Virus record (IMG/VR): IMGVR_UViG_3300037882_001770
Span: 253,494 to 317,493 of that record
Strand: one strand, 5' to 3'
Length of the DNA stretch: 64,000 nucleotides
Positions 2,219 to 62,464 of this stretch are shown in pieces. Position numbers and translations under genes: made by a program. Under the pieces are notes generated by a model that saw nothing but the letters and a program-made list of their open reading frames with translations, searched no databases and was not told where the DNA came from. How positions within the stretch are numbered: the first letter of the stretch is position 1; each line of letters opens with the position of its first letter.

Positions 2219-3007
2219 ATGACCAATCATTATCAAACTCTAGGCGTTGACCGCAGCGCTTCCCCAGATGAAATTAAACGAGCTTATCGAAAGTTGGCCA
2301 GCCAGCATCACCCCGACAAAGGTGGTGACACTAAAAAATTTCAAGAAATACAAACAGCATATGATGTACTAAGTGACCCGCAGAAAAAGTCTGCCTATGA
2401 TAATCCTGCAGCCCAGACTTTTTCTGGGTTCGGTAATCAACCATTTGATTTTGATACTATTTTTGACATATTCGGTGCTAGATTTAATCATCCACATCAA
2501 CAACCACGTGGGCGCACACAGGCACGCATGAGTCTATGGATTACTCTATTAGACGCGGTGCAGGGCGGGAGACGTACTATCAGTATCGGCACTCAGCAAG
2601 GAACCCAGGCAGTAGAAATAGAAATTCCAATTGGGATCAATGACAGTGACTCTGTACAATATTCTGGTATTGCGCCAGGTGGTGGCGACTTGATAATAAC
2701 GTATCGCATACATAACAATCCTAAATGGCAACGCCAGGGATCTAATCTCATAACCGAACAAATGATCACTATCTGGGATTGCATACTAGGTGGTCAGACC
2801 ATGTTGCGAGATATCGAAGGCAATCAATTAAACTTAACAGTTCCAGCAAGAACTCAGCCCGGCACAATGCTACGACTTCGTGGTCGCGGAATTCCACAGA
2901 GGCAAGGACCAACTGGAGATCTTTTGGTTAAAATTGTTGCACACATACCTGACCAAATTGACCCTGAATTGCTGACTATGATTGAGCAAACTGGCAATAA
3001 AAACTAA
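2219..3007 (+). CDS. dnaJ: DnaJ/CbpA-type co-chaperone (no zinc finger)
   Basis: J-domain with HPD (HHPDKGG), G/F linker, C-terminal LRLRGRG...GDL domain. Confidence 0.9.
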   Translation: MTNHYQTLGVDRSASPDEIKRAYRKLASQHHPDKGGDTKKFQEIQTAYDVLSDPQKKSAYDNPAAQTFSGFGNQPFDFDTIFDIFGARFNHPHQQPRGRTQARMSLWITLLDAVQGGRRTISIGTQQGTQAVEIEIPIGINDSDSVQYSGIAPGGGDLIITYRIHNNPKWQRQGSNLITEQMITIWDCILGGQTMLRDIEGNQLNLTVPARTQPGTMLRLRGRGIPQRQGPTGDLLVKIVAHIPDQIDPELLTMIEQTGNKN

Positions 3008-3016
3008 CTATATTAC

Positions 3017-3045
3017 TTGCACTTAAAAGTGATATAATATATAAT
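3017..3045 (+). promoter_or_regulatory. Sigma70-like promoter for clpA
   Basis: TTGCAC-N17-TATAAT. Confidence 0.55.
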
Positions 3046-3075
3046 GTAACGTAGCAATCACCATTCAAGGAACTC

Positions 3076-5355
3076 ATGCAAAATAATCCCGAAATTGAAC
3101 AAATTATCGAATCTGCGGTCCGCATTGCAAAAGATAAACAGCACGAATACGTACTGACTGAACATGTGTTGCTGGCCATGTTGAAGTATGCGCCGTTTCG
3201 CAAAGTCTTGGCCAAGTATGGAACCACTGTGGATTTGTTTGAACAGGAATTAGAAAGTTATCTTGACAGCCTAGTTAATCTTGTCAAGGCAAATGCCAAC
3301 TTACAACCTAAAAAAACAAATGCACTCGAGCGTTGTTTCAACCGAGCTCTTACTCAGGTACTGTTCACTGGACGTAGAACAATTACCACAGCAGATTTAT
3401 ATCTGGCCATGATGAGTGAAACAAACAGTCATGCACACTATTTCTTGTTGAAGTATGGCGTAAAGAAAAACGAGTTTGTTGAGTTTTGGCAAAAACACTA
3501 CAATCACAATGATATTAAAATTACCGACCAACAGGCTGATGAAATTTTAACTGAGCACTGTACTGATTTAACCAAGATGGCGCATGAAAATCAACTTGAG
3601 CCAATGATTGGTCGCAGTAGTGAACTAGATGAAATGATCACAGTGCTGGCTCGCAAGTTCAAAGCCAACGTGCTTATGGTTGGAGATCCCGGAGTAGGCA
3701 AGACAGCTATTGTAGAAGGCCTAGCCCAGGAAATCAATGCAGGACGTGTTCCTGAGTTTCTTAAAGGCTACGAAGTGTGGGGGCTCGAAATTGGCAGCTT
3801 GCTTGCTGGTTCAAAATATCGCGGCGAGTTTGAAGAAAAATTCAAACAAGTTATTAGTGCGTTAGAAGCCAAGAAAAATTGCATCTTGTTTATTGATGAG
3901 GCGCACACTATGAAAGGTGCTGGCAGTTCTAGCAACAGCACACTTGATTTTGCAAACATGTTAAAACCGGCCATCACCAAGGGCAATTTAAAGGTGGTAG
4001 CCAGTACTACCTGGGAAGAATTTTACGAATCGTTTGAAAAAGATCGTGCATTGATGCGCCGTTTCCATCGCGTAAGCATCGACGAACCCAACGACGAAAC
4101 TACAGAACAGATTCTAATTGGACTTAGTCCACGTTTGGAATCATATCATAATGTGTTGATTGACACAGATGCTATGACAGCCGCTGTGGAATTAAGTCGA
4201 CGTTATATTCATGATCGTCAAAATCCAGACAAGAGTATCGACTTGTTAGACGGTGCCTGTGCTAAGGAACGTGTTAAAGATATGGGCACAGTGACTATTA
4301 CCAAGGACATGATCATGGCTCAGCTCAGTAGGATCACAAATGTTCCGTTGGATCGTTTACAAAACGAACGTTCGACTAAAATTGTTGATTTAGAAAGCAA
4401 CATCAAACAGAAATTATACGGACAAGATGCCGCAGTCGACGCAGTATTGGATCGTGTGTACATCAACTTCTCTGGTATCGGTAACCAAACACGCCCAATT
4501 GCTAGTTTCTTGTTTTTAGGACCAACAGGTACAGGTAAAACAGAGCTTGCCAAATTGTTAGCCGAAAACTTAGACATGCAGTTGTTGAAATACGATATGA
4601 GTGAATATCAAGAACGGCATACAGTATCAAGTTTGATTGGTGCACCCCCGGGCTATGTAGGATTTGATGATGGCAATCTAGGTGGCGGCAAACTAATCGC
4701 CGACATTAGTAAAAACCCATTTAGTATTGTGTTGTTTGATGAAATTGAAAAGGCGCATCCGGATGTGATCAATATCATGTTGCAGATGCTGGACGAAGCC
4801 AGACTTACCAGTAGTAATGGCAAAACTGTGAATCTCAAGAACTGCATTATCATTATGACCAGTAATTTAGGCGCCAAAGACAACGAAAGTAACAATATTG
4901 GATTTGCTCAAAGTTTAGAAAAATCAGGCGAAGAAAATCGTGCAATGAAAGAATTCTTCAAACCTGAGCTACGTAATCGTATTGATCAAATTTGCAAGTT
5001 TGTTAAATTGGACACATTGGCCATCAAGAAGATTGTGGTCAAGTTTACAGACCAGTTGCAATCCAGTCTTGCTGACAAGAACATCCGTCTCACTCTAAGC
5101 GAACCAGTGATTGATCTGTTGGCTGACAAAGGCTACGATAATAAAATGGGTGCAAGACCACTTAATCGCAAAATTGACGAATTGATACGAGTACCGTTGT
5201 CTAAGAAAATTTTGTTTGATCAATTGACCAACTGCAATATCCATGCAGTGATCAATGGTGATGCAATTGATTTTCAAATTACACCCATGGACGCTCAGCC
5301 CATAGTTGACAGTGAAGGATACATAGTTCTTGATCAATTCAAGCCCACAATCTAA
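3076..5355 (+). CDS. clpA: ClpA-like AAA+ unfoldase
   Basis: Clp N-domain (EHVLLA), two Walker A (GDPGVGKT, GPTGTGKT), Walker B (FIDEAH, FDEIEKAH), GAPPGYVG, IGF ClpP-docking loop; no ClpB middle domain. Confidence 0.9.
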   Translation: MQNNPEIEQIIESAVRIAKDKQHEYVLTEHVLLAMLKYAPFRKVLAKYGTTVDLFEQELESYLDSLVNLVKANANLQPKKTNALERCFNRALTQVLFTGRRTITTADLYLAMMSETNSHAHYFLLKYGVKKNEFVEFWQKHYNHNDIKITDQQADEILTEHCTDLTKMAHENQLEPMIGRSSELDEMITVLARKFKANVLMVGDPGVGKTAIVEGLAQEINAGRVPEFLKGYEVWGLEIGSLLAGSKYRGEFEEKFKQVISALEAKKNCILFIDEAHTMKGAGSSSNSTLDFANMLKPAITKGNLKVVASTTWEEFYESFEKDRALMRRFHRVSIDEPNDETTEQILIGLSPRLESYHNVLIDTDAMTAAVELSRRYIHDRQNPDKSIDLLDGACAKERVKDMGTVTITKDMIMAQLSRITNVPLDRLQNERSTKIVDLESNIKQKLYGQDAAVDAVLDRVYINFSGIGNQTRPIASFLFLGPTGTGKTELAKLLAENLDMQLLKYDMSEYQERHTVSSLIGAPPGYVGFDDGNLGGGKLIADISKNPFSIVLFDEIEKAHPDVINIMLQMLDEARLTSSNGKTVNLKNCIIIMTSNLGAKDNESNNIGFAQSLEKSGEENRAMKEFFKPELRNRIDQICKFVKLDTLAIKKIVVKFTDQLQSSLADKNIRLTLSEPVIDLLADKGYDNKMGARPLNRKIDELIRVPLSKKILFDQLTNCNIHAVINGDAIDFQITPMDAQPIVDSEGYIVLDQFKPTI

Positions 5356-56635: not shown

Positions 56636-57919
56636 ATGAATTCATCTAAATCTTCTACTACACGTACAGTAGCGGCCAGCACCGTCGGCACCATTTTTGA
56701 ATGGTACGACTTTGTTATTTTTGGCTTGGCCACTGTGTTGGTTTTTAATAAACTATTTTTTCCCAATATAGATCCAGCATTGGCCTTGGTAGTTTCAATG
56801 TTGGCCTATGCTGTGGGCATTGTGGCCAGACCCTTGGGTGGCCTAATTTACGGTGCCATCGGCGATCGCTACGGGCGCCGACGCATGTTGGTGGCCACCA
56901 TGCTGATCATGGGTGCCAGTACCTTTGCTATAGGTCTGTTGCCTACCTATAGCACCATTGGCGTATGGGCTCCTATCATGCTAATTGTGCTGCGTATTGT
57001 ACAGGGCATTGGCATCGGCGGTGAATGGGGCGGAGCCAGTGTGATGATTCAAGAATCTGCACCAGATCATCAGCGTGGCTTTTATGCCAGTTTTATACAG
57101 ACCGGACTACCTGCGGGCATGCTGATGGCATCGGGTGTGTTTGCTGCGTTGACCACTGTGTTGACCGAAGCTGAATTCCTAAGCTGGGGATGGCGTATTC
57201 CATTCTTATTGAGTGCAGTGTTGGTGCTGATAGGCACAGCAATTCGTTATCAAATTCCAGAAACTCCGGTCTTTTTAGCCATGAAAAATGTTTCTAAGTC
57301 GCCCATACGCGATCTTTTTGTCAAGCATCCCAAGACCTTGTTAAAAGGCATCGGTCTTAAAATAACAGAAAGTGTGTGGTTCTTTATAGTCACAGGATTT
57401 ATAGTAGGCTATGCTGTTACCAATTTTGCTATACCTCGTGGAGATCTTTTAAAGATAATCATGGTCAGCAATGCCATCAGTATAGTGTGGGCCCTGGCCA
57501 TGGGCTATCTGTCAGACCAGATAGGTCGCAGAGCCATTTTCTTTTTTGGTGCGGCATTTACTGTCGTAATGCCATTTCCTATCTTTTACTTGGTCAGCAC
57601 CGGAGATTTTTATCTAATTGCAGTGGCCATGATTGCGGGGCAATGCATTGGCAGTACCACTATGTTTGCTGTGTTGAGCTCGTATCTACCTGAAATATTC
57701 CCAGCTGAAGTTCGTAGCACAGGAGCCAGCTTGAGTTTTCAAATAGGAGCAGCCATAACCGGAGGCCTGGTACCGGTATTAGCGGCCTGGGCGGTGGGTG
57801 TTTGGGGCACCAATTATGCAGTGTCCTTATTGATGATGCTGTTTGGCTTGATCACATTTGTCACTGTGCTCAATACCAAAGAAACTTATCAAACATCAAT
57901 GACGCAATTAAATGATTAA
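56636..57919 (+). CDS. MFS transporter, metabolite:H+ symporter (MHS) family
   Basis: EWYDF, RPLGG, GDRYGRR, GGEWGG, WGWRIPF, PETP motifs. Confidence 0.9.
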   Translation: MNSSKSSTTRTVAASTVGTIFEWYDFVIFGLATVLVFNKLFFPNIDPALALVVSMLAYAVGIVARPLGGLIYGAIGDRYGRRRMLVATMLIMGASTFAIGLLPTYSTIGVWAPIMLIVLRIVQGIGIGGEWGGASVMIQESAPDHQRGFYASFIQTGLPAGMLMASGVFAALTTVLTEAEFLSWGWRIPFLLSAVLVLIGTAIRYQIPETPVFLAMKNVSKSPIRDLFVKHPKTLLKGIGLKITESVWFFIVTGFIVGYAVTNFAIPRGDLLKIIMVSNAISIVWALAMGYLSDQIGRRAIFFFGAAFTVVMPFPIFYLVSTGDFYLIAVAMIAGQCIGSTTMFAVLSSYLPEIFPAEVRSTGASLSFQIGAAITGGLVPVLAAWAVGVWGTNYAVSLLMMLFGLITFVTVLNTKETYQTSMTQLND

Positions 57920-58742
57920 TACCTTTGCAGATAAACCTGAATTCATTGGTACAGATCCTAGACAGCGTAGACCTGCCCATTGGCAATACACTGTGACCGC
58001 TGAATTAATGACTCAGCGTCATGATGTGTTTTTTAAAAAGGCCCAGTTGGCAGGCGCCAGAGTATTGGACCTGGGATCGTGTTGTGCAGCCACTGGCGCA
58101 TGGGTGTTAGATCGTGGTGCAGATCACTATACCGGAGTTGAATTACAAGAAAAATTCGTTGCCAGTGCTAGAAACAATTTACAACAGTATTATCCAGCCG
58201 ATCGCTGGAGCATAGTACAAAGTGATCTAGAACAGTACATAGACCGTTGTGAACAGGAGTTTGACGTAGTGTTACTGGCCGGTGTGTTACACTGTTTGTT
58301 TGATTATCATAAAATACTGCGCAAATTGACCAGTATTTCACAACAGATCATCATTGAATGTTTCCACCCGTATAATGGTCTTCGAGATCTTTATCCAGAA
58401 CTTGACAATGATCAGCGTTATGCATTGTGTCAGCAGTTGAGTCTGGCCCAGATAGCGGCTGAAACCGGCACCGCAGGTGAAAATGGTGGCAGTTGGGTAT
58501 TTGACGGAGTCAGACTCAGCATGGCTGCCACGCAAAATGTGTTTGGATATTTGGGTTGGCAAACCGATTTAGAATTGAATGATTATGCCATAGCTCAATT
58601 GCCCGAAGTATACAGCATGGCCACTCCCAGCTACTGCCCTAGATATGTGGTACAGGCGGTCCCGGGCCAACGCACTGTGTTTGAATTTGCCGACGGCTAT
58701 GCCGATCCTAAACAAAGCAATTATGAATACAAAAACTGGTAG
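57912..58742 (+). CDS. Class I SAM-dependent methyltransferase
   Basis: VLDLGS, GVE, FDVV..AGVLH. Confidence 0.75.
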   Translation: MINTFADKPEFIGTDPRQRRPAHWQYTVTAELMTQRHDVFFKKAQLAGARVLDLGSCCAATGAWVLDRGADHYTGVELQEKFVASARNNLQQYYPADRWSIVQSDLEQYIDRCEQEFDVVLLAGVLHCLFDYHKILRKLTSISQQIIIECFHPYNGLRDLYPELDNDQRYALCQQLSLAQIAAETGTAGENGGSWVFDGVRLSMAATQNVFGYLGWQTDLELNDYAIAQLPEVYSMATPSYCPRYVVQAVPGQRTVFEFADGYADPKQSNYEYKNW

Positions 58743-59361
58743 TTGGCAATTTGACGCAGGGGTGGCCAGCACGTTTGTTGCACATGCTCGCCAACACATA
58801 CCCAACTATGATCTGGTCATCAACAAATGTGTGGACTTGGTCAACAATAAGTTAGGACAGTTTGATCGCATAATTGATGTGGGATGTGCCACTGGTGAAA
58901 CCATTCGTAGATTGCATACAGCTGGCTTTTTGAATTTGACCGGTGTAGAAGCCAGTGCAGCCATGCTGAGTCACTGTGATCGTAACATTGCTAGACTTAT
59001 CCACAGCGATCGTTTTCCGCAGGAAACCTTTGATGCTGTGCTTTGCAATTGGACCTTGCATTTTGTTCCGGACAAAATGAAATATCTTGCGGATATCTAT
59101 GCCAATTTGTCCAAATCGGGCTTTATGGTTCTAAGCGACAAAACCAGTTTGGATCCTGTCTGCATCGATCATTATCATAAATGGAAACACAGTCAAGGTG
59201 TTGCTTGGCCCGACATCTTGGCCAAAGAAGCCGCAGTAAAAGGAATTATGTATATAGACTCGCCTGAGTGGTATATAAATGCACTGACACAAGTGGGATT
59301 CAGCAACGTTCGAATAATTGATGCCAGCTGGTGTTTTACAACCTTTTTATGCACAAAATGA
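58723..59361 (+). CDS. CmoA-like SAM-dependent methyltransferase
   Basis: WQFD..VA..F..H..QHIPNY, DVGCATG, NWTLHF, LSDK. Confidence 0.7.
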   Translation: MNTKTGSWQFDAGVASTFVAHARQHIPNYDLVINKCVDLVNNKLGQFDRIIDVGCATGETIRRLHTAGFLNLTGVEASAAMLSHCDRNIARLIHSDRFPQETFDAVLCNWTLHFVPDKMKYLADIYANLSKSGFMVLSDKTSLDPVCIDHYHKWKHSQGVAWPDILAKEAAVKGIMYIDSPEWYINALTQVGFSNVRIIDASWCFTTFLCTK

Positions 59362-60476
59362 TCAAACCCTTTTATGCCTACGGTTATTATCAAGTGGGCC
59401 ATAATGATTATGTCAAAAAGACCGACGCACTAGTTGCGGCTACAAAAAGTCGGTTGCCAGTACACTGGAACTTTCACGACGATGTTTATTCAGCAGCTGA
59501 TTGGACTCGGCGGCCAGCAGGCACTCTTAAAGACCTGTACCGCATCAGAGCACAACAACTGCGTGATCGTTACGACTATATTGTGATTCATTTCAGCGGT
59601 GGCGCAGACTCCTGGACTGTGCTCAACAGTTTTTTAAGCAACAACATACCGGTAGACGAAGTGTACACACGCTGGGCCAGAGCTGAACGCAAATACACAA
59701 AGGCCAATGCAGCAGATCGTAGAGAATGCAATTTAAGCAGTGAATACGAGTATGCCACCGAGCCAGTATTAAAAGAAATACAAAAGAAATTCCCCAATAC
59801 TCGCATACATGTGGATGATTATTCAGATGCTTACACAAAAGAAGTAAATGAAAAGACCTTAGAGACCAGCAGTCATTATATCACCATGGGCACCTTTCAT
59901 AGATTTACTAGAAAATCACCAGGTGAATTGGCTGCAGTGGCTGCCGGCAAACGTGTGGGAGTGATCTACGGTTTTGACAAGATACAGTGTAATCTAACAC
60001 AGGGCCGATTCAGTGCGTATTTTGTAGATCGTTTTGGCAGTACCGACATTGATCCTGAGCGCACACAGGAAGGATTTTATTGGACACCAGACCTGTCAGA
60101 AATTCCCATCATGCAGGCACATGATTTACGCTTGTATTATCAGACCATTGTGGATCGCGTACAGAGTCGACAACTGAACCCACGCGAATGCTTTATACGT
60201 ACCTGCTATGCCGATTACAATTTAAACACATTTCAAGTGGAAAAACCTCTGGGCAGCAAGGTCTGGGCCAGTGAACAGTGGATTCAAAAGTACAATCCAC
60301 GCTATGCAGAATCCTGGGAATGGGCCCTGGGTCAATATACCCACAACATTGACAATGCATATTATGAGTTTTTTGGCAACAAGATCAAACTGGGCTACAA
60401 GACCATGCGTAGTCCGCTGTACTATGTGGGGCCCATTGCAGGTGCAGAACAGTTGAATTTTGAGTTTTCACACTGA
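59358..60476 (+). CDS. PP-loop (adenine nucleotide alpha hydrolase-like) protein
   Basis: FSGGADS; LY..RA.QLR..YDYI shared with 51932-53116. Confidence 0.65.
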   Translation: MIKPFYAYGYYQVGHNDYVKKTDALVAATKSRLPVHWNFHDDVYSAADWTRRPAGTLKDLYRIRAQQLRDRYDYIVIHFSGGADSWTVLNSFLSNNIPVDEVYTRWARAERKYTKANAADRRECNLSSEYEYATEPVLKEIQKKFPNTRIHVDDYSDAYTKEVNEKTLETSSHYITMGTFHRFTRKSPGELAAVAAGKRVGVIYGFDKIQCNLTQGRFSAYFVDRFGSTDIDPERTQEGFYWTPDLSEIPIMQAHDLRLYYQTIVDRVQSRQLNPRECFIRTCYADYNLNTFQVEKPLGSKVWASEQWIQKYNPRYAESWEWALGQYTHNIDNAYYEFFGNKIKLGYKTMRSPLYYVGPIAGAEQLNFEFSH

Positions 60477-60502: not shown

Positions 60503-60673
60503 ATGGAACAGAACAAAAAACCCGTAGACAAGTTTTTTTACTCTGCCAAAGAGTGGGACCGTTTGGGCTGTGGCCCGTTGCCGACAGAACGTGATCGCGG
60601 TCAAATACATCAAGACGCTCATGCAAAAGGTAATCCTAAGATTGACGGCAAAGCTGTAAAAGGGTATAATTAA
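60503..60673 (+). CDS. Small hypothetical protein (56 aa, not in ORF track)
   Basis: ATG 4 nt after TAAATA; MEQNKKPVDKFFYSAKEWDRLGCGPLP... Confidence 0.5.
   Translation: MEQNKKPVDKFFYSAKEWDRLGCGPLPTERDRGQIHQDAHAKGNPKIDGKAVKGYN
60642..60670 (+). promoter_or_regulatory. Sigma70-like promoter for tmRNA
   Basis: TTGACG-N17-TATAAT. Confidence 0.65.
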
Positions 60674-60748
60674 CTTAGTTTTGCATTTTGATCAAAATGC
60701 ATGGTGGGTCGGACTGTTAGAATGTAGTAGTAAAGAATTGTTGTAATT

Positions 60749-61095
60749 CCTTCGTAGTGAAGGCGTTGTGGACCCGGGTTCGATTCCCGGCAGGTCCACC
60801 ATAAGGAGATTGACATGGATCAAGAAGCTGTATTAGTAGTCGCATTTCTACTGATAGGACTATTGTTTGTCTTTTTATGATGGGCCTGACATGGTCTCGA
60901 CATGGCGAGATAGCGAAAGAGGCAACACAGTAGGCGATGACTGTAAATCAAGCAAATTATGTAAATGCAAAAACATCTACAGGCGAAACTACTGTATCAG
61001 GTAAGAACATCAAGTTCTCTGCTCGTACAGCACAACGCCAATCATTAGCAGTTTAATCACTGCTTAGGGTAATTATACCTCGTAACAGAAAATAG
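60749..61095 (+). ncRNA. ssrA: Permuted (two-piece) tmRNA; outer ends approximate
   Basis: T-arm CCGGG-TTCGATT-CCCGG and CAGGTCC-A-CCA (ends 60801) precede 5' strand GGGCCTG (60882); 7-bp acceptor stem with G3:U70; CATGGCG/CGTTGTG helix; tag frame 60967-61056 starts GCA and ends LAV-stop. Confidence 0.88.
60815..60880 (+). CDS. 21-aa hydrophobic peptide ORF in tmRNA intervening segment
   Basis: TAAGGAG SD; MDQEAVLVVAFLLIGLLFVFL. Confidence 0.45.
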   Translation: MDQEAVLVVAFLLIGLLFVFL

Positions 61096-61096
61096 T

Positions 61097-61123
61097 AGAA
61101 CCCGCTTCGGCGGGTTTCTTTTT
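61097..61123 (+). terminator. Intrinsic terminator after tmRNA
   Basis: AACCCGC-TTCG-GCGGGTT plus T-tract. Confidence 0.85.
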
Positions 61124-61154
61124 GGCAAATTAAAATATCATGGTAAGTAAACGC

Positions 61155-61961
61155 ATGATCGATATTATTACTGTTGTGTTTCGAGAAGAATTGGATGTAT
61201 TACGATTGCAGGCCCGCAGCATCGAACTGTATTGTCACAGTGCCGATTTGGGTCGTATATATGTTGTGGTCAATGATGCCACCGTAGACACCAGTGAAAT
61301 TGATTTGGCCTGGTGGGGCACTTTACGTGATCGGGTCACAGTGGTGCATAGGGCTGCTTGGCCCGTGGCGTATGCAGAAAATGGCTGGCTAACACAACAG
61401 CTATTAAAGTTAATGGCCACTGAATTATGCACCAGTACTTGGAGCATGGTATTGGATGCCAAAACTATATTTGTTAAACCTGTTGCACCTGTAGCCGATT
61501 GCCCCGTGGTGGGCATATTGGATATCTATCCGGTGTTTGATGTAAGTCGCCAACGTGTAAATGAGTTGTTTGGCGTAGAATTAACTCAGCAATTAGGACC
61601 CGGCGGTGTGCCTTTTATTTTGAATAATGCGTTGACTCTCGAATTAATGAGTGAAGTTGCTGTGAGAACCAACCAATCATTTGATCAATGGTTTCAAGCG
61701 CAAGGAATGGTGACAGAATTTATTCTTTATTCTGGATATGTGCTTTACAAGTTTGGGTCATTTGATGTCATTTACAACACCGACGATATTGCTGTTAAAC
61801 CTTGTAATCTGTGTCACAGCGAAGTGGCCAGTTTTGGACGCAAGTTTGCAGAGATGCAGCACAGTACCACAGTCAGTGTACATCGACGTGCTTGGGAACA
61901 ACTGACGTCACAACAACAACACACCTATACACAATTTCTCGCGGCCAGAGGCATCGAATGA
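61155..61961 (+). CDS. Glycosyltransferase-like protein (DUF6492-like)
   Basis: GWLTQQLLKL, VLDAK, TEFILY motifs. Confidence 0.55.
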   Translation: MIDIITVVFREELDVLRLQARSIELYCHSADLGRIYVVVNDATVDTSEIDLAWWGTLRDRVTVVHRAAWPVAYAENGWLTQQLLKLMATELCTSTWSMVLDAKTIFVKPVAPVADCPVVGILDIYPVFDVSRQRVNELFGVELTQQLGPGGVPFILNNALTLELMSEVAVRTNQSFDQWFQAQGMVTEFILYSGYVLYKFGSFDVIYNTDDIAVKPCNLCHSEVASFGRKFAEMQHSTTVSVHRRAWEQLTSQQQHTYTQFLAARGIE

Positions 61962-62464
61962 AAGCAATGGCCATGGTAGCACATCCAGACGATTGTGTGA
62001 TCTTTGCCTACAGCTACATACACAATCATCCTGAATATTCCTGGACTGTGTGCTACTTGACCTACACAGCTGAATCTGATCGCGGCAAAGAATTTGTTGA
62101 ATTCTGGCAGAAAAGAAATGTAGCTACCAAATTTTTAGGCTATGCTGATCAATGGAATCATGAACAGAATTGTCCGGGCACAATTGATGACGTTTCGGCC
62201 ACACGACACATACAGCAGGCCATTCTAGATCAAGATCTAGTGCTGACTCACAATGCACAAGGCGAGTACGGACATCCGCATCATGTCATGATCAACCGTG
62301 CCACAGCACAGCATCCACACCGAATTACCTTTGCTAACTTTGGGCAGGGCAATGCTCGATATTCTGTAGAATCTGGAGCATATGATTTAAATGAATTTCC
62401 ACTGCATCGAGACATAGTCGAGCAGTTTCATAAACACACACATGTTAACGAGTACACAGTATGA
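61958..62464 (+). CDS. PIG-L/LmbE-family deacetylase-like protein
   Basis: AHPDD and THNAQGEYGHPHH. Confidence 0.75.
   Translation: MKAMAMVAHPDDCVIFAYSYIHNHPEYSWTVCYLTYTAESDRGKEFVEFWQKRNVATKFLGYADQWNHEQNCPGTIDDVSATRHIQQAILDQDLVLTHNAQGEYGHPHHVMINRATAQHPHRITFANFGQGNARYSVESGAYDLNEFPLHRDIVEQFHKHTHVNEYTV

Follow-up and report, generated by a model that had tools for sequence, protein, structure and literature searches.

A freshwater jumbo phage of 317,493 bp carries its own circularly permuted, beta-type ribosome-rescue RNA (tmRNA) gene with a conserved 29-codon tag, alongside genes for a ClpA-like unfoldase, ClpS and ClpP, and the intervening segment of the gene, which is expected to be removed when the RNA matures, is filled by a conserved hydrophobic mini-ORF. 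Phage-encoded two-piece tmRNAs have already been published (PMC9004378); what appears to be new here is the long tag family, the co-occurrence with Clp genes and the mini-ORF. Processing, alanine charging, tagging and the fate of tagged proteins are inferred from sequence and by analogy with bacteria.

Results

A permuted tmRNA gene with a 29-codon tag

The window analysed was a 64,000-nucleotide stretch (positions 253,494 to 317,493 of IMG/VR record IMGVR_UViG_3300037882_001770), and all coordinates below are those of the window. A preliminary description made from the sequence alone had proposed a circularly permuted two-piece tmRNA at 60749-61123, with a tRNA-like 3' half preceding its 5' half by 80 nt, a G3:U70 pair, a pk1-like stem, a resume codon, an unusually long tag and a terminator, and had named ARAGORN and the Rfam permuted-tmRNA models as a means of checking it. 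That observation held, with every element present where it had been placed (Table 1). ARAGORN and two Rfam models called a permuted, beta-type tmRNA at 60709-61147, with ARAGORN reporting the gene as permuted (3' domain at gene positions 55-93, 5' domain at 174-200, 80-nt spacer) and giving the tag as AKTSTGETTVSGKNIKFSARTAQRQSLAV. Rfam RF04321 scored 118.4 bits against a gathering cut-off of 47 and RF01850 scored 111.9 against 84, both over the full model length and far beyond chance. The functional unit was somewhat wider than first described, as a promoter-like site lies upstream and conserved helix strands of the acceptor piece start at about 60739.

Table 1. Coordinates of the tmRNA locus and of associated genes in the window
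Position	Strand	Feature	Supporting observations
60503..60673	+	56-aa ORF directly upstream of the tmRNA gene	Conserved neighbour by tblastn; no Pfam match; only uncharacterised clusters matched in the ESM Atlas
60642..60670	+	Sigma-70-type promoter-like site, TTGACG-17-TATAAT; probable tmRNA precursor promoter	11 of 12 consensus positions; consensus match only, about 2 such sites in shuffles of the region, role inferred
60739..60801	+	Acceptor piece: helix-2 3' strands (including 60764-60770); T-arm CCGGG/TTCGATT/CCCGG 60774-60790; acceptor 3' strand CAGGTCC 60791-60797; discriminator A73 60798; encoded CCA 60799-60801	Rfam alignment; ARAGORN 3' domain; covariation of T-arm and helix 2a in 93 relatives
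60802..60881	+	Intervening segment (IVS), exactly 80 nt, expected to be removed on maturation; ends pair and extend the acceptor stem	ARAGORN geometry; predicted folds of the precursor and of the IVS alone (-17.9 kcal/mol) pair UAAGGAGAU with the last codons of the mini-ORF
60815..60880	+	Mini-ORF MDQEAVLVVAFLLIGLLFVFL (21 codons plus TGA), preceded by AAGGAG at 60803-60808; stop codon ends 1 nt before tmRNA G1	Family of 42 loci
60882..61124	+	Coding piece: acceptor 5' strand GGGCCTG 60882-60888 (G3 at 60884); D-loop-like 60889-60900; helix 2a strand 60901-60907; PK1-like hairpin 60927-60944 (ACAGT 60927-60931, ACTGT 60940-60944); tag ORF; stop-codon hairpin; terminator	Rfam; ARAGORN; covariation
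60967..61056	+	Tag reading frame AKTSTGETTVSGKNIKFSARTAQRQSLAV (29 codons, 60967-61053; resume codon GCA at 60967) plus TAA 61054-61056; stop in the loop of hairpin 61046-61050/61059-61063	ARAGORN; family of 87 genes
61098..61124	+	Intrinsic terminator: 8-bp GC-rich stem with loop TTCG (61098-61117), T run to 61124	RNA-library contigs that hold close relatives end here
3076..5355	+	ClpA-type AAA+ unfoldase, 759 aa; candidate partner for degrading tagged proteins	TIGR02639; alignment to E. coli ClpA 1KSF
2219..3007	+	DnaJ-type co-chaperone directly upstream of the ClpA-like gene	Pfam DnaJ plus DnaJ_C; TIGR02349 172 bits, under its cut-off

To test whether the predicted helices are maintained, we compared viral relatives of the gene. 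The 7-bp acceptor stem, in which GGGCCUG pairs with CAGGUCC followed by ACCA, covaried at pairs 4-6 across 102 unique genes, while G3:U70 was kept in 101 and ACCA was encoded in 94. In the inter-piece helix 2a (60764-60770 with 60901-60907), 83-93 of 93 sequences were paired with 3-5 pair types per position, the T-arm was paired in 92-93 of 93, and the PK1-like hairpin pair was GC in 62 and AU in 30 sequences. The resume context UGUAAAU/GCA matched the Rfam consensus, and GUAAAU/GCA was homologous to that of short-tag relatives and at the same distance from the hairpin. The position next to the stop-codon hairpin stem (AGCAG/CUGCU) was paired as A-U, U-A or C-G in the window and in the relatives L098 and L102, as read by eye (L numbers denote relatives of the locus).

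The 56-aa ORF was found directly upstream of the tmRNA gene in L102 (75% identity), L039/L151 (64%), L082 (60%) and L035, and the L002 spacer has a frame resembling it (..YTQREWDREVG..). RNAcofold predicted a 15-bp pairing between the acceptor piece (60755-60770) and the 3' part of the tag ORF (61031-61047), which L102 seemed to match; however, across 24 unique strand/tag combinations native duplexes were no better than cross-pairings (-7.5 against -7.0 kcal/mol, p = 0.20), and the pairing was rejected as coincidence.

The long tag belongs to a viral family

The tag departs from the typical, though not obligatory, tmRNA tag of about 10 residues ending in LAA or VAA, as it has 29 residues ending LAV; tags of 2 to 27+ aa are on record (PMC11915505, PMC8403727). 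It proved to belong to a family of 87 viral genes encoding 44 unique peptides of 28-31 aa, all ending [LF]AV, rather than being a singular oddity. Within this family length variants were of whole codons only, the third codon position was the most variable and the other frames were closed, such that the frame evolves as a coding sequence. In a less biased sample of this viral tmRNA clade, tag lengths were bimodal, with 9-14 aa in 65 genes and 23-31 aa in 22. The tag was absent from the supplements examined of the tmRNA census, and the C-terminal half of the tag resembles cyanobacterial tags (ANNIVxFxR...), which is no more than a lead.

The 50,697 GenBank phage records held no homologue beyond the T-arm, and the exact 5'-half motif was found in only 6 loci of about 185,000 species genomes, none of which is a permuted tmRNA. 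A 151-genome class sample, in which only 10 candidates per genome were scored, gave no RF01850 match over the cut-off and was uninformative for placing the gene among cellular beta-type tmRNAs. Freshwater and lake runs held conserved parts of the gene, which is the only clue to the host. Close relatives of the long-tag coding piece occurred in three lake metatranscriptomes, with coverage ending at the terminator; these data are assembled contigs of relatives that say nothing on RNA ends, and some of them span spacers, so they could be precursor RNA or contaminating DNA.

A mini-ORF fills the intervening segment

The mini-ORF, which had not been remarked upon in the preliminary description, belongs to a family of 42 viral genes (28 unique peptides of 21-32 aa, Kyte-Doolittle hydropathy 1.2-2.2) in which every stop codon lies 1 nt before tmRNA G1. 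The family showed a clear coding signature, with codon-position entropy of 0.75/0.38/1.06 and 774 hydrophobic-to-hydrophobic replacements against 64 other, and 12 of 97 spacers held an SD+ATG ORF, against 1.8 +/- 1.3 in shuffles. The closest same-tag relatives (L039, L098, L102 and L134) lack it, so it is an optional module, and its SD is paired with the last codons in the predicted folds. In being a short (under 60 aa) hydrophobic ORF with an SD that is sequestered in the predicted folds, it resembles small hydrophobic peptides such as type I toxins, whose SD is sequestered by 5'-3' pairing; this is a resemblance only. The mini-peptides matched no Pfam family, and neither the tag, the mini-peptide nor the 56-aa ORF has paralogues in the phage genome.

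The phage encodes Clp components but not SmpB

The genome is that of a T4-related phage, with a Gp23 capsid protein (328 bits), a T4-type DNA polymerase and no integrase. The ClpA-type protein scored 797.6 bits end to end with TIGR02639, under the equivalog cut-off of 993, and is called ClpA-like here. Pfam identified Clp_N, AAA, AAA_lid_9, AAA_2 and ClpB_D2-small domains, with no ClpB-type middle domain, and the protein aligned to E. coli ClpA 1KSF over residues 4-719, with IGF where ClpA has its ClpP-docking IGL. The gene is conserved at 47-77% identity in four related jumbo records that also carry a permuted tmRNA, but it occurs in related phages with short canonical tags too, so ClpA is not specifically linked to the [LF]AV tag. 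The phage itself also has ClpS and ClpP. The 435-aa ORF next to ClpP, tested as a candidate ClpX, is a twitch radical SAM protein, and no Lon or FtsH is encoded. SmpB was absent here and in five relatives, including a 100%-complete record, so host factors would be needed for trans-translation.

Discussion

We consider it likely that this is a functional ssrA gene of a T4-related freshwater jumbo phage in the two-piece, beta-type form. The analysis itself establishes the sequence and structure hallmarks of a permuted tmRNA with covariation across about 100 viral relatives, the near-invariant G3:U70, the conserved resume site and the coding evolution of the tag frame, whereas what follows is inferred from how two-piece tmRNAs work in bacteria. 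One precursor would be transcribed from the promoter-like site to the terminator, RNase P would cut 5' of G60882, and 3' trimming would expose the encoded CCA at 60801. The acceptor piece of roughly 65-70 nt and the coding piece of roughly 243 nt would stay base-paired through the acceptor stem and helix 2. Host AlaRS would charge the RNA, and host SmpB and EF-Tu would deliver it to ribosomes stalled on broken mRNAs, which should be plentiful during infection, with translation resuming at GCA 60967 and appending Ala plus the 29-residue tag. More weakly, we infer that the long basic tag ending LAV is a degron variant read by the phage's own ClpA-ClpP, modulated by ClpS, and/or by host proteases, which would give the phage its own rescue-and-recycle route; a terminal Val instead of Ala may, however, weaken classical ClpX/ClpA recognition rather than redirect it. 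The excised segment would itself be a minimal mRNA, with an SD, a 21-codon hydrophobic ORF and a stop codon 1 nt from the RNase P site, probably yielding a small membrane peptide.

The interpretation in the preliminary description is partly supported. Its identification of a phage-encoded permuted tmRNA with a 29-codon tag was right, as were its background statements that permuted ssrA occurs in alphaproteobacteria and some cyanobacteria and betaproteobacteria and that typical tags are of about 10 aa ending LAA, although it left out the published phage two-piece tmRNAs. Its inference that the phage reroutes ribosome rescue and gives stalled products a different degradation signal fits the conserved tag family, the ClpA/ClpS/ClpP genes and the lack of SmpB, but remains a plausible inference and, the host being unknown, the tag cannot be said to differ from that of the host.

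The best surviving alternative, although unlikely, is that the tmRNA only supplies extra ribosome-rescue capacity, with a long tag that is neutral or that deliberately weakens degradation through its terminal Val, so that rescue is uncoupled from proteolysis. The tag ends in AV whereas 79 of 87 sampled relatives end in AA, ClpA is present whatever the tag type, and no adaptor gene has been identified. Conservation of the whole 28-31-residue peptide, including the invariant [LF]AV end, across 44 unique sequences argues instead for a specific recognition function, and the phage invests in ClpA, ClpS and ClpP.

It is very unlikely that the true resume codon lies further downstream, for example GCT at 61021, which would give a tag of ordinary length (ARTAQRQSLAV) and leave the upstream 18 codons as untranslated RNA. 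For the relative L106, ARAGORN chose a downstream resume codon (AANADSYELVA) although a 35-codon frame is open from the homologous upstream site, and many long tags look like an extension followed by a canonical tag. However, the upstream resume context and its distance from the hairpin match those of short-tag relatives, the first 18 codons stay open in all 87 genes, indels there are whole codons (for example SGK versus SAGK or KANK), and substitutions are mostly conservative or synonymous.

Slightly less likely still is that the RNA acts mainly as a decoy that titrates host SmpB or blocks host trans-translation, as proposed for the tRNA-like-domain-only gene of mycobacteriophage DS6A (cited in PMC4131195). 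Without an SmpB of its own the phage RNA must compete for that of the host, but a decoy would not need a complete mRNA-like domain with a tag frame, resume context and stop-codon hairpin conserved under coding constraint. A functionless passenger, whether a host ssrA copy or an attachment-site remnant, can be all but dismissed: although ssrA is a common integration site of which phages often carry fragments (PMC9004378), the gene is complete with promoter-like and terminator sites, the genome has no integrase, hundreds of IMG/VR contigs carry conserved relatives with compensatory changes, and the 5'-half motif was not found in a permuted tmRNA of the species genomes searched.

The gene shares with the betaproteobacterial two-piece tmRNA (RF01850 beta_tmRNA; merged model RF04321; lineage described by Sharkady & Williams 2004, cited in PMC9004378) the permuted order of 3' tRNA half, IVS, 5' half, PK1-like hairpin, tag and terminator, the same helices, G3:U70 and the ACCA end. 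It differs in being encoded by a jumbo phage at 43% G+C, in its acceptor stem of GGGCCUG rather than the consensus GGGGGUG, in its 80-nt IVS where the Rfam consensus alignment shows roughly 30 nt, in its tag and in its mini-ORF. The two-piece ssrA genes of marine phages, such as the OM43 myophage Melnitz and pelagimyophages (PMC9004378), are likewise permuted genes in T4-like aquatic myophages with no integrase, for which similar roles have been proposed, namely maintaining the hijacked translation machinery or selectively tagging proteins. The Melnitz gene is alpha-type and sits behind a glutamine riboswitch, whereas here the gene is beta-type, no riboswitch was detected with Rfam, the tag belongs to the long [LF]AV family, ClpA/ClpS/ClpP are co-encoded and the IVS holds a mini-ORF.

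In Mycoplasma an extended ssrA tag of 27 aa, also about three times the usual length, goes with a change of protease and is recognised by Lon (PMC8403727 and works cited there), although the sequences are unrelated and the phage encodes ClpA/ClpS/ClpP rather than Lon. The tmRNAs of mycobacteriophages (Bxz1 group) and Bacillus phage G (PMC4131195) are also phage-encoded in large phages that rely on host SmpB, but have the standard one-piece gene form and different host phyla. A tRNA-Ala gene within a permuted-tmRNA intervening sequence, reported as 'a unique feature' (PMC11915505), is a further case in which the segment removed on maturation carries a second gene, whereas the cargo here is a protein-coding mini-ORF.

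A more speculative reading, which we regard as doubtful, is that the locus is a three-in-one precursor, from which RNase P and 3' trimming would release the two tmRNA pieces and also a minimal mRNA for a 21-residue membrane peptide. As the stop codon of that mRNA would sit 1 nt from its new 3' end, ribosomes finishing it would be near-non-stop substrates of the very tmRNA made from the same transcript, while the long [LF]AV tag would form an orthogonal degron read by the phage's own ClpA-ClpP/ClpS rather than by host ClpXP. The result would be a self-contained viral tagging-and-degradation circuit with a built-in substrate or regulator.

As far as the searched literature shows, the mini-ORF that exactly fills the excised segment is the first protein-coding cargo seen in a tmRNA intervening sequence, and it shows how tightly phages can overlay RNA-processing and coding signals. 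The bimodal tag lengths in this viral clade, with nothing between 15 and 22 aa, suggest a discrete added module rather than drift. As tmRNA tags are the classic bacterial degron, a virus that brings its own tmRNA with a conserved, three-fold longer and chemically different tag, together with its own ClpA/ClpS/ClpP, would be a natural test case for orthogonal protein-degradation signals, and would also bear on how phages manage the flood of broken mRNAs and stalled ribosomes they cause.

A permuted tmRNA gene on a jumbo phage contig

The preliminary description placed a circularly permuted tmRNA gene here, and its anatomy proved correct to the base, with the 3' half of a tRNA-like domain followed after exactly 80 nt by the 5' half to give a 7-bp acceptor stem with G3:U70. 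ARAGORN reported a permuted tmRNA with the tag AKTSTGETTVSGKNIKFSARTAQRQSLAV, and both the merged permuted model of Rfam (118.4 bits; cut-off 47) and the beta-type model (111.9 bits; cut-off 84) matched over their full length. The features of the locus, and of the other loci and records discussed here, are collected in the table.

Positions of features at the tmRNA locus, elsewhere on the phage contig (G000, whole-contig numbering) and on other viral loci retrieved from IMG/VR (L numbers)
Feature	Record	Position	Sequence or remark
DnaJ gene and ClpA-like unfoldase gene, adjacent	window	2219-5355	DnaJ directly upstream
ClpA-like unfoldase gene	window	3076-5355	759 aa
Four ORFs absent from L082	window	56636-60476	
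56-aa ORF of unknown function	window	60503-60673	directly upstream of the tmRNA gene
Sigma-70 promoter-like site, near consensus	window	60642-60670	TTGACG-17-TATAAT; overlaps the last codons of the 56-aa ORF
Complementary stretches, acceptor piece and 3' part of tag ORF	window	60755-60770 and 61031-61047	15 bp
Strand pairing with helix 2a	window	60764-60770	
T-arm	window	60774-60790	
Acceptor 3' strand	window	60791-60797	CAGGTCC
A73	window	60798	
Encoded CCA	window	60799-60801	
Intervening segment	window	60802-60881	80 nt
SD of mini-ORF	window	60803-60808	AAGGAG
Mini-ORF	window	60815-60880	ATG at 60815; TGA at 60878-60880; 21 codons
5' half of tRNA-like domain	window	60882-60888	GGGCCTG
D-loop-like stretch	window		after the 5' half
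Helix 2a	window	60901-60907	
Hairpin (PK1-like)	window	60927-60944	ACAGT/ACTGT
Resume codon	window	60967	GCA; opens a 29-codon frame
Stop codon of tag frame	window	61054-61056	TAA, in a hairpin loop
Hairpin around the stop codon	window	61046-61050/61059-61063	
Intrinsic terminator	window	61098-61124	
DUF6492 protein and PIG-L-family deacetylase genes	window	61140-62464	just downstream of the tmRNA
ClpS, canonical-scoring ClpP and second, divergent ClpP-like gene	G000	178339-178575; 198835-199359 and 201040-201585	
Permuted tmRNA with T-arm-like stretch in spacer	L004	1619-2072	GGTTCGATTCCGC
Permuted tmRNA with T-arm-like stretch in spacer	L020	7378-7769	GGTTCGAATCCTCC
Open frame in spacer of permuted tmRNA	L002	3860-3945 (minus strand)	..YTQREWDREVGIGSVPAD..
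One-piece tmRNA	L022	2334-2659	24-aa tag AKTSNKVVSIFAKRPAQPALALAA

The gene lies in the last 64 kb of a single 317,493-bp contig at 42.7% G+C, an IMG/VR virus record rated 89% complete by CheckV. The contig encodes a T4-type major capsid protein (Gp23, 328 bits) and a T4-type DNA polymerase whose best cultured relatives are Sinorhizobium phage Phosso (49.6%), Agrobacterium phage Atu_ph07 (46%) and the Rak2/121Q-like jumbo phages (about 42%). Its genes are almost all co-directional and no tyrosine integrase was found. From these features together we conclude that it is a jumbo phage and that the ssrA is not an attachment-site remnant. The tmRNA was the only tRNA-like gene that ARAGORN found on the contig, although related jumbo records (L128 and L134) have tRNA clusters near their tmRNA; as the contig is about 89% complete, the tRNAs may lie in the missing part. 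Sequencing runs holding conserved parts of the gene are freshwater and lake metagenomes and metatranscriptomes.

The 56-aa ORF directly upstream of the tmRNA gene is conserved in that place in several relatives (56-75% identity), with no Pfam match and matches only to uncharacterised clusters in the ESM Atlas. An open frame in the spacer of the permuted tmRNA of L002 resembles this ORF (..YSAKEWDRLGCGPLPTE.. in the window), which hints at rearrangement between the neighbour gene and the intervening segment. The two genes just downstream of the tmRNA, encoding a DUF6492 protein and a PIG-L-family deacetylase, are syntenic in the relative L082 (40% and 73% identity), which lacks the four ORFs found upstream in the window.

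Conservation of the RNA among viral relatives

To investigate whether the gene is maintained as an RNA, we scanned IMG/VR with three motifs of the gene and fetched more than 150 viral loci. Among 102 unique permuted genes, acceptor pairs 1, 2 and 7 are invariant G-C, whereas pairs 4-6 switch between G-C, C-G, A-U and U-A with full complementarity, giving 19 distinct stems; G3:U70 is kept in 101 of 102 genes and ACCA is encoded in 94. In 93 unique sequences of the closer clade, helix 2a, the T-arm and the PK1-like hairpin all show compensatory changes. In some relatives with the same tag (L039/L151 and L134) the CCA is not fully encoded at the 3' end of the acceptor piece (..CATCTCCAAAA and ..GGTCCACCT), and these, unlike the gene studied here, would need a CCA-adding enzyme. 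A 15-bp complementarity between the acceptor piece and the 3' part of the tag ORF, including an exact 9-mer (GGCGUUGUG with CACAACGCC), does not covary in relatives (p = 0.20) and is probably coincidental.

The exact 5'-half motif occurs in 22 IMG/VR contigs, but in only 6 loci among about 185,000 species-representative cellular genomes, of which only one is a tmRNA, and that one is one-piece. The sequence type with GGGCCUG is thus essentially viral in the data searched, while GenBank phage records gave no homologue beyond the T-arm. One-piece (standard-form) tmRNA genes on viral contigs (L022, L001, L003, L011 and L013) share the same 5' half or the identical 32-nt 3' half with the permuted genes, and the tag of L022 begins like that of the window, suggesting exchange of modules between permuted and standard phage tmRNAs.

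A conserved family of long tags

Phage-encoded two-piece tmRNAs are already known. Buchholz et al. describe one in the OM43 myophage Melnitz and counted 53 two-piece forms among 133 unique phage tmRNAs, nearly all aquatic (PMC9004378), and the tmRNA census lists 79 unique phage sequences and gives 10 aa as the commonest tag length (PMC11915505). What stands out here is the tag, and it is not a singleton, as a scan for two conserved tag segments returned 86 viral contigs, which together with the window give 87 genes and 44 unique peptides (29 aa in 62 genes, 31 in 17, 28 in 7 and 30 in 1). Every one ends in [LF]AV, and the consensus is A[NK][AT][SN][TK]GEVTVSGK[NG][VI][KR]FSAR[TS][AV][QK][RA][QE][ST][LF]AV. 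Length changes are of whole codons, the third codon position is the most variable and the second the least (entropy 0.51 against 0.26), the other two frames are closed in 40 of 40 and 32 of 40 sequences, and replacements are mostly conservative (T/V, I/V, T/S, L/F, K/R).

The resume context GUAAAU|GCA, and its distance from the hairpin, match those of short-tag relatives such as L007 (ANSSEYALAA) and L015 (ANDEQFALAA). We therefore take the extra 19 codons to be an insertion inside the tag frame and not a mis-called start. In a less biased sample, selected on a pre-tag motif only, tag lengths among 87 unique genes are bimodal, with 65 genes having 9-14 aa, 22 having 23-31 aa and none falling between; 79 end in AA, 4 in AV and 2 in VA. 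Several other long-tag families exist, for example ANDNAFDFTAMSFTGNTVANDSKFALAA and ANVSTFKFWQSPVSIAANDEAFALAA, and many of them read as an added module followed by a canonical tag.

Candidate partner proteins encoded by the phage

No SmpB was found in the phage, nor in five related records, including one that is 100% complete with terminal repeats, and searches of the phage for an ArfB-type RF-1 domain, Lon and FtsH were also negative. The phage does encode a ClpA-like unfoldase with Clp_N, two AAA+ modules and a D2-small domain, which aligns end to end with E. coli ClpA (1KSF, 571 bits) and has IGF at the ClpP-docking IGL loop of ClpA, but scores under the NCBI equivalog cut-off. Elsewhere on the contig are ClpS (77 bits), a canonical-scoring ClpP (NF001368, 315.9 bits, above its cut-off) and a second, divergent ClpP-like gene; the ORF after ClpP is a twitch-domain radical SAM protein and not ClpX. 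With the DnaJ gene directly upstream of the ClpA-like gene, these make up a proteostasis gene set in a jumbo phage. The ClpA-like gene is conserved at 47-77% identity in four related large records of 156-332 kb, each of which also carries a beta-type permuted tmRNA. Those relatives have different tags (L134, the [LF]AV type; L149, ANDEVYALAA; L128, ANDSVFDIKLAA; L106, a 35-codon frame), and ClpA therefore goes with the phage clade and not specifically with this tag.

A hydrophobic reading frame in the intervening segment

Two nucleotides after the CCA lies an SD, and six nucleotides further on an ATG opens the frame MDQEAVLVVAFLLIGLLFVFL, whose stop ends 1 nt before G1. In the first sample, 12 of 97 unique spacers held an SD+ATG ORF of at least 15 codons, against 1.8 +/- 1.3 (maximum 6) in shuffles. 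A scan for the start context returned 41 viral contigs, and all 42 genes, counting the window, have an intact ORF, giving 28 unique peptides of 21, 23, 24, 26, 29 or 32 residues. The pattern is M[DN][DE] and an acidic head followed by a hydrophobic helix (mean hydropathy 1.2-2.2), and in every case the stop (TGA or TAA) lies exactly 1 nt before G1. In the 24-codon class (20 unique DNA sequences), codon-position entropy is 0.75/0.38/1.06, 21 of 22 third positions vary against 8 of 21 second positions, replacements in the helix are hydrophobic-to-hydrophobic 774 times against 64 other, and the +1 frame is closed in all. This is a protein-coding signature that cannot be explained only by the need for the ends of the segment to pair, although the last codons (GUC YUU UUA) do pair with the SD region in the predicted folds of the precursor and of the intervening segment.

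The mini-ORF occurs with many acceptor stems and many tags, and the closest same-tag relatives lack it, so that it is a mobile, optional module; the window is the only sampled gene that combines it with the [LF]AV tag. No Pfam family matched. The 2025 tmRNA census mentions a tRNA gene inside an intervening sequence as a unique feature (PMC11915505) but no coding cargo, and our literature searches found nothing comparable. The T-arm-like stretches in the spacers of the viral permuted tmRNA genes of L004 and L020 recall that tRNA gene.

Relatives in metatranscriptome assemblies

Three lake metatranscriptome assemblies contain contigs 93-95% identical to 60893/60927-61124, which carry the same T-to-V and I-to-V variants as L039 and L134, and coverage stops at the terminator. 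As these are assembled contigs, some of which span spacers, and DNA carry-over cannot be excluded, they show that close relatives of the long-tag coding piece are present in RNA libraries but carry no information on processing.

Interpretation

The observation in the preliminary description is real and its identification of the gene is correct. Its interpretation, that the phage reroutes ribosome rescue and gives stalled products a different degradation signal, is partly supported. Whereas phage-encoded two-piece tmRNAs were known, the conserved long [LF]AV tag family, the bimodal tag lengths in a large freshwater viral clade, the co-encoded ClpA-like protein, ClpS and ClpP and the mini-ORF of the intervening segment set this gene apart and make it worth experimental follow-up.

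Four other readings were weighed. The first is that the tmRNA provides rescue without dedicated degradation. The coding constraint on the first 18 codons speaks against a downstream resume codon, and also against an SmpB decoy. A passenger gene is opposed by the covariation and the absence of an integrase.

Our analysis shows that the gene has every sequence and structure hallmark of a permuted tmRNA and is under purifying selection as an RNA, that both the tag frame and the frame in the intervening segment evolve as coding sequences, and that the phage encodes the ClpA-like protein, ClpS and ClpP but not SmpB. The steps that would follow are inferred from established knowledge of two-piece tmRNAs: RNase P would cleave at G60882 and 3' trimming would reach the CCA, the two pieces would stay paired, host AlaRS would charge the RNA, host SmpB and EF-Tu would deliver it, and translation would resume at the GCA and add Ala plus 29 residues. 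A weaker inference is that the tag is a degron read by phage ClpA-ClpP or by host proteases. The 27-aa tag of Mycoplasma that shifted to Lon is a precedent for a long tag tracking a protease change (PMC8403727). In E. coli, ssrA variants ending in AAV or ASV are reported to be still degraded, only more slowly (Andersen et al. 1998), and a terminal Val is therefore compatible with a tuned degron.
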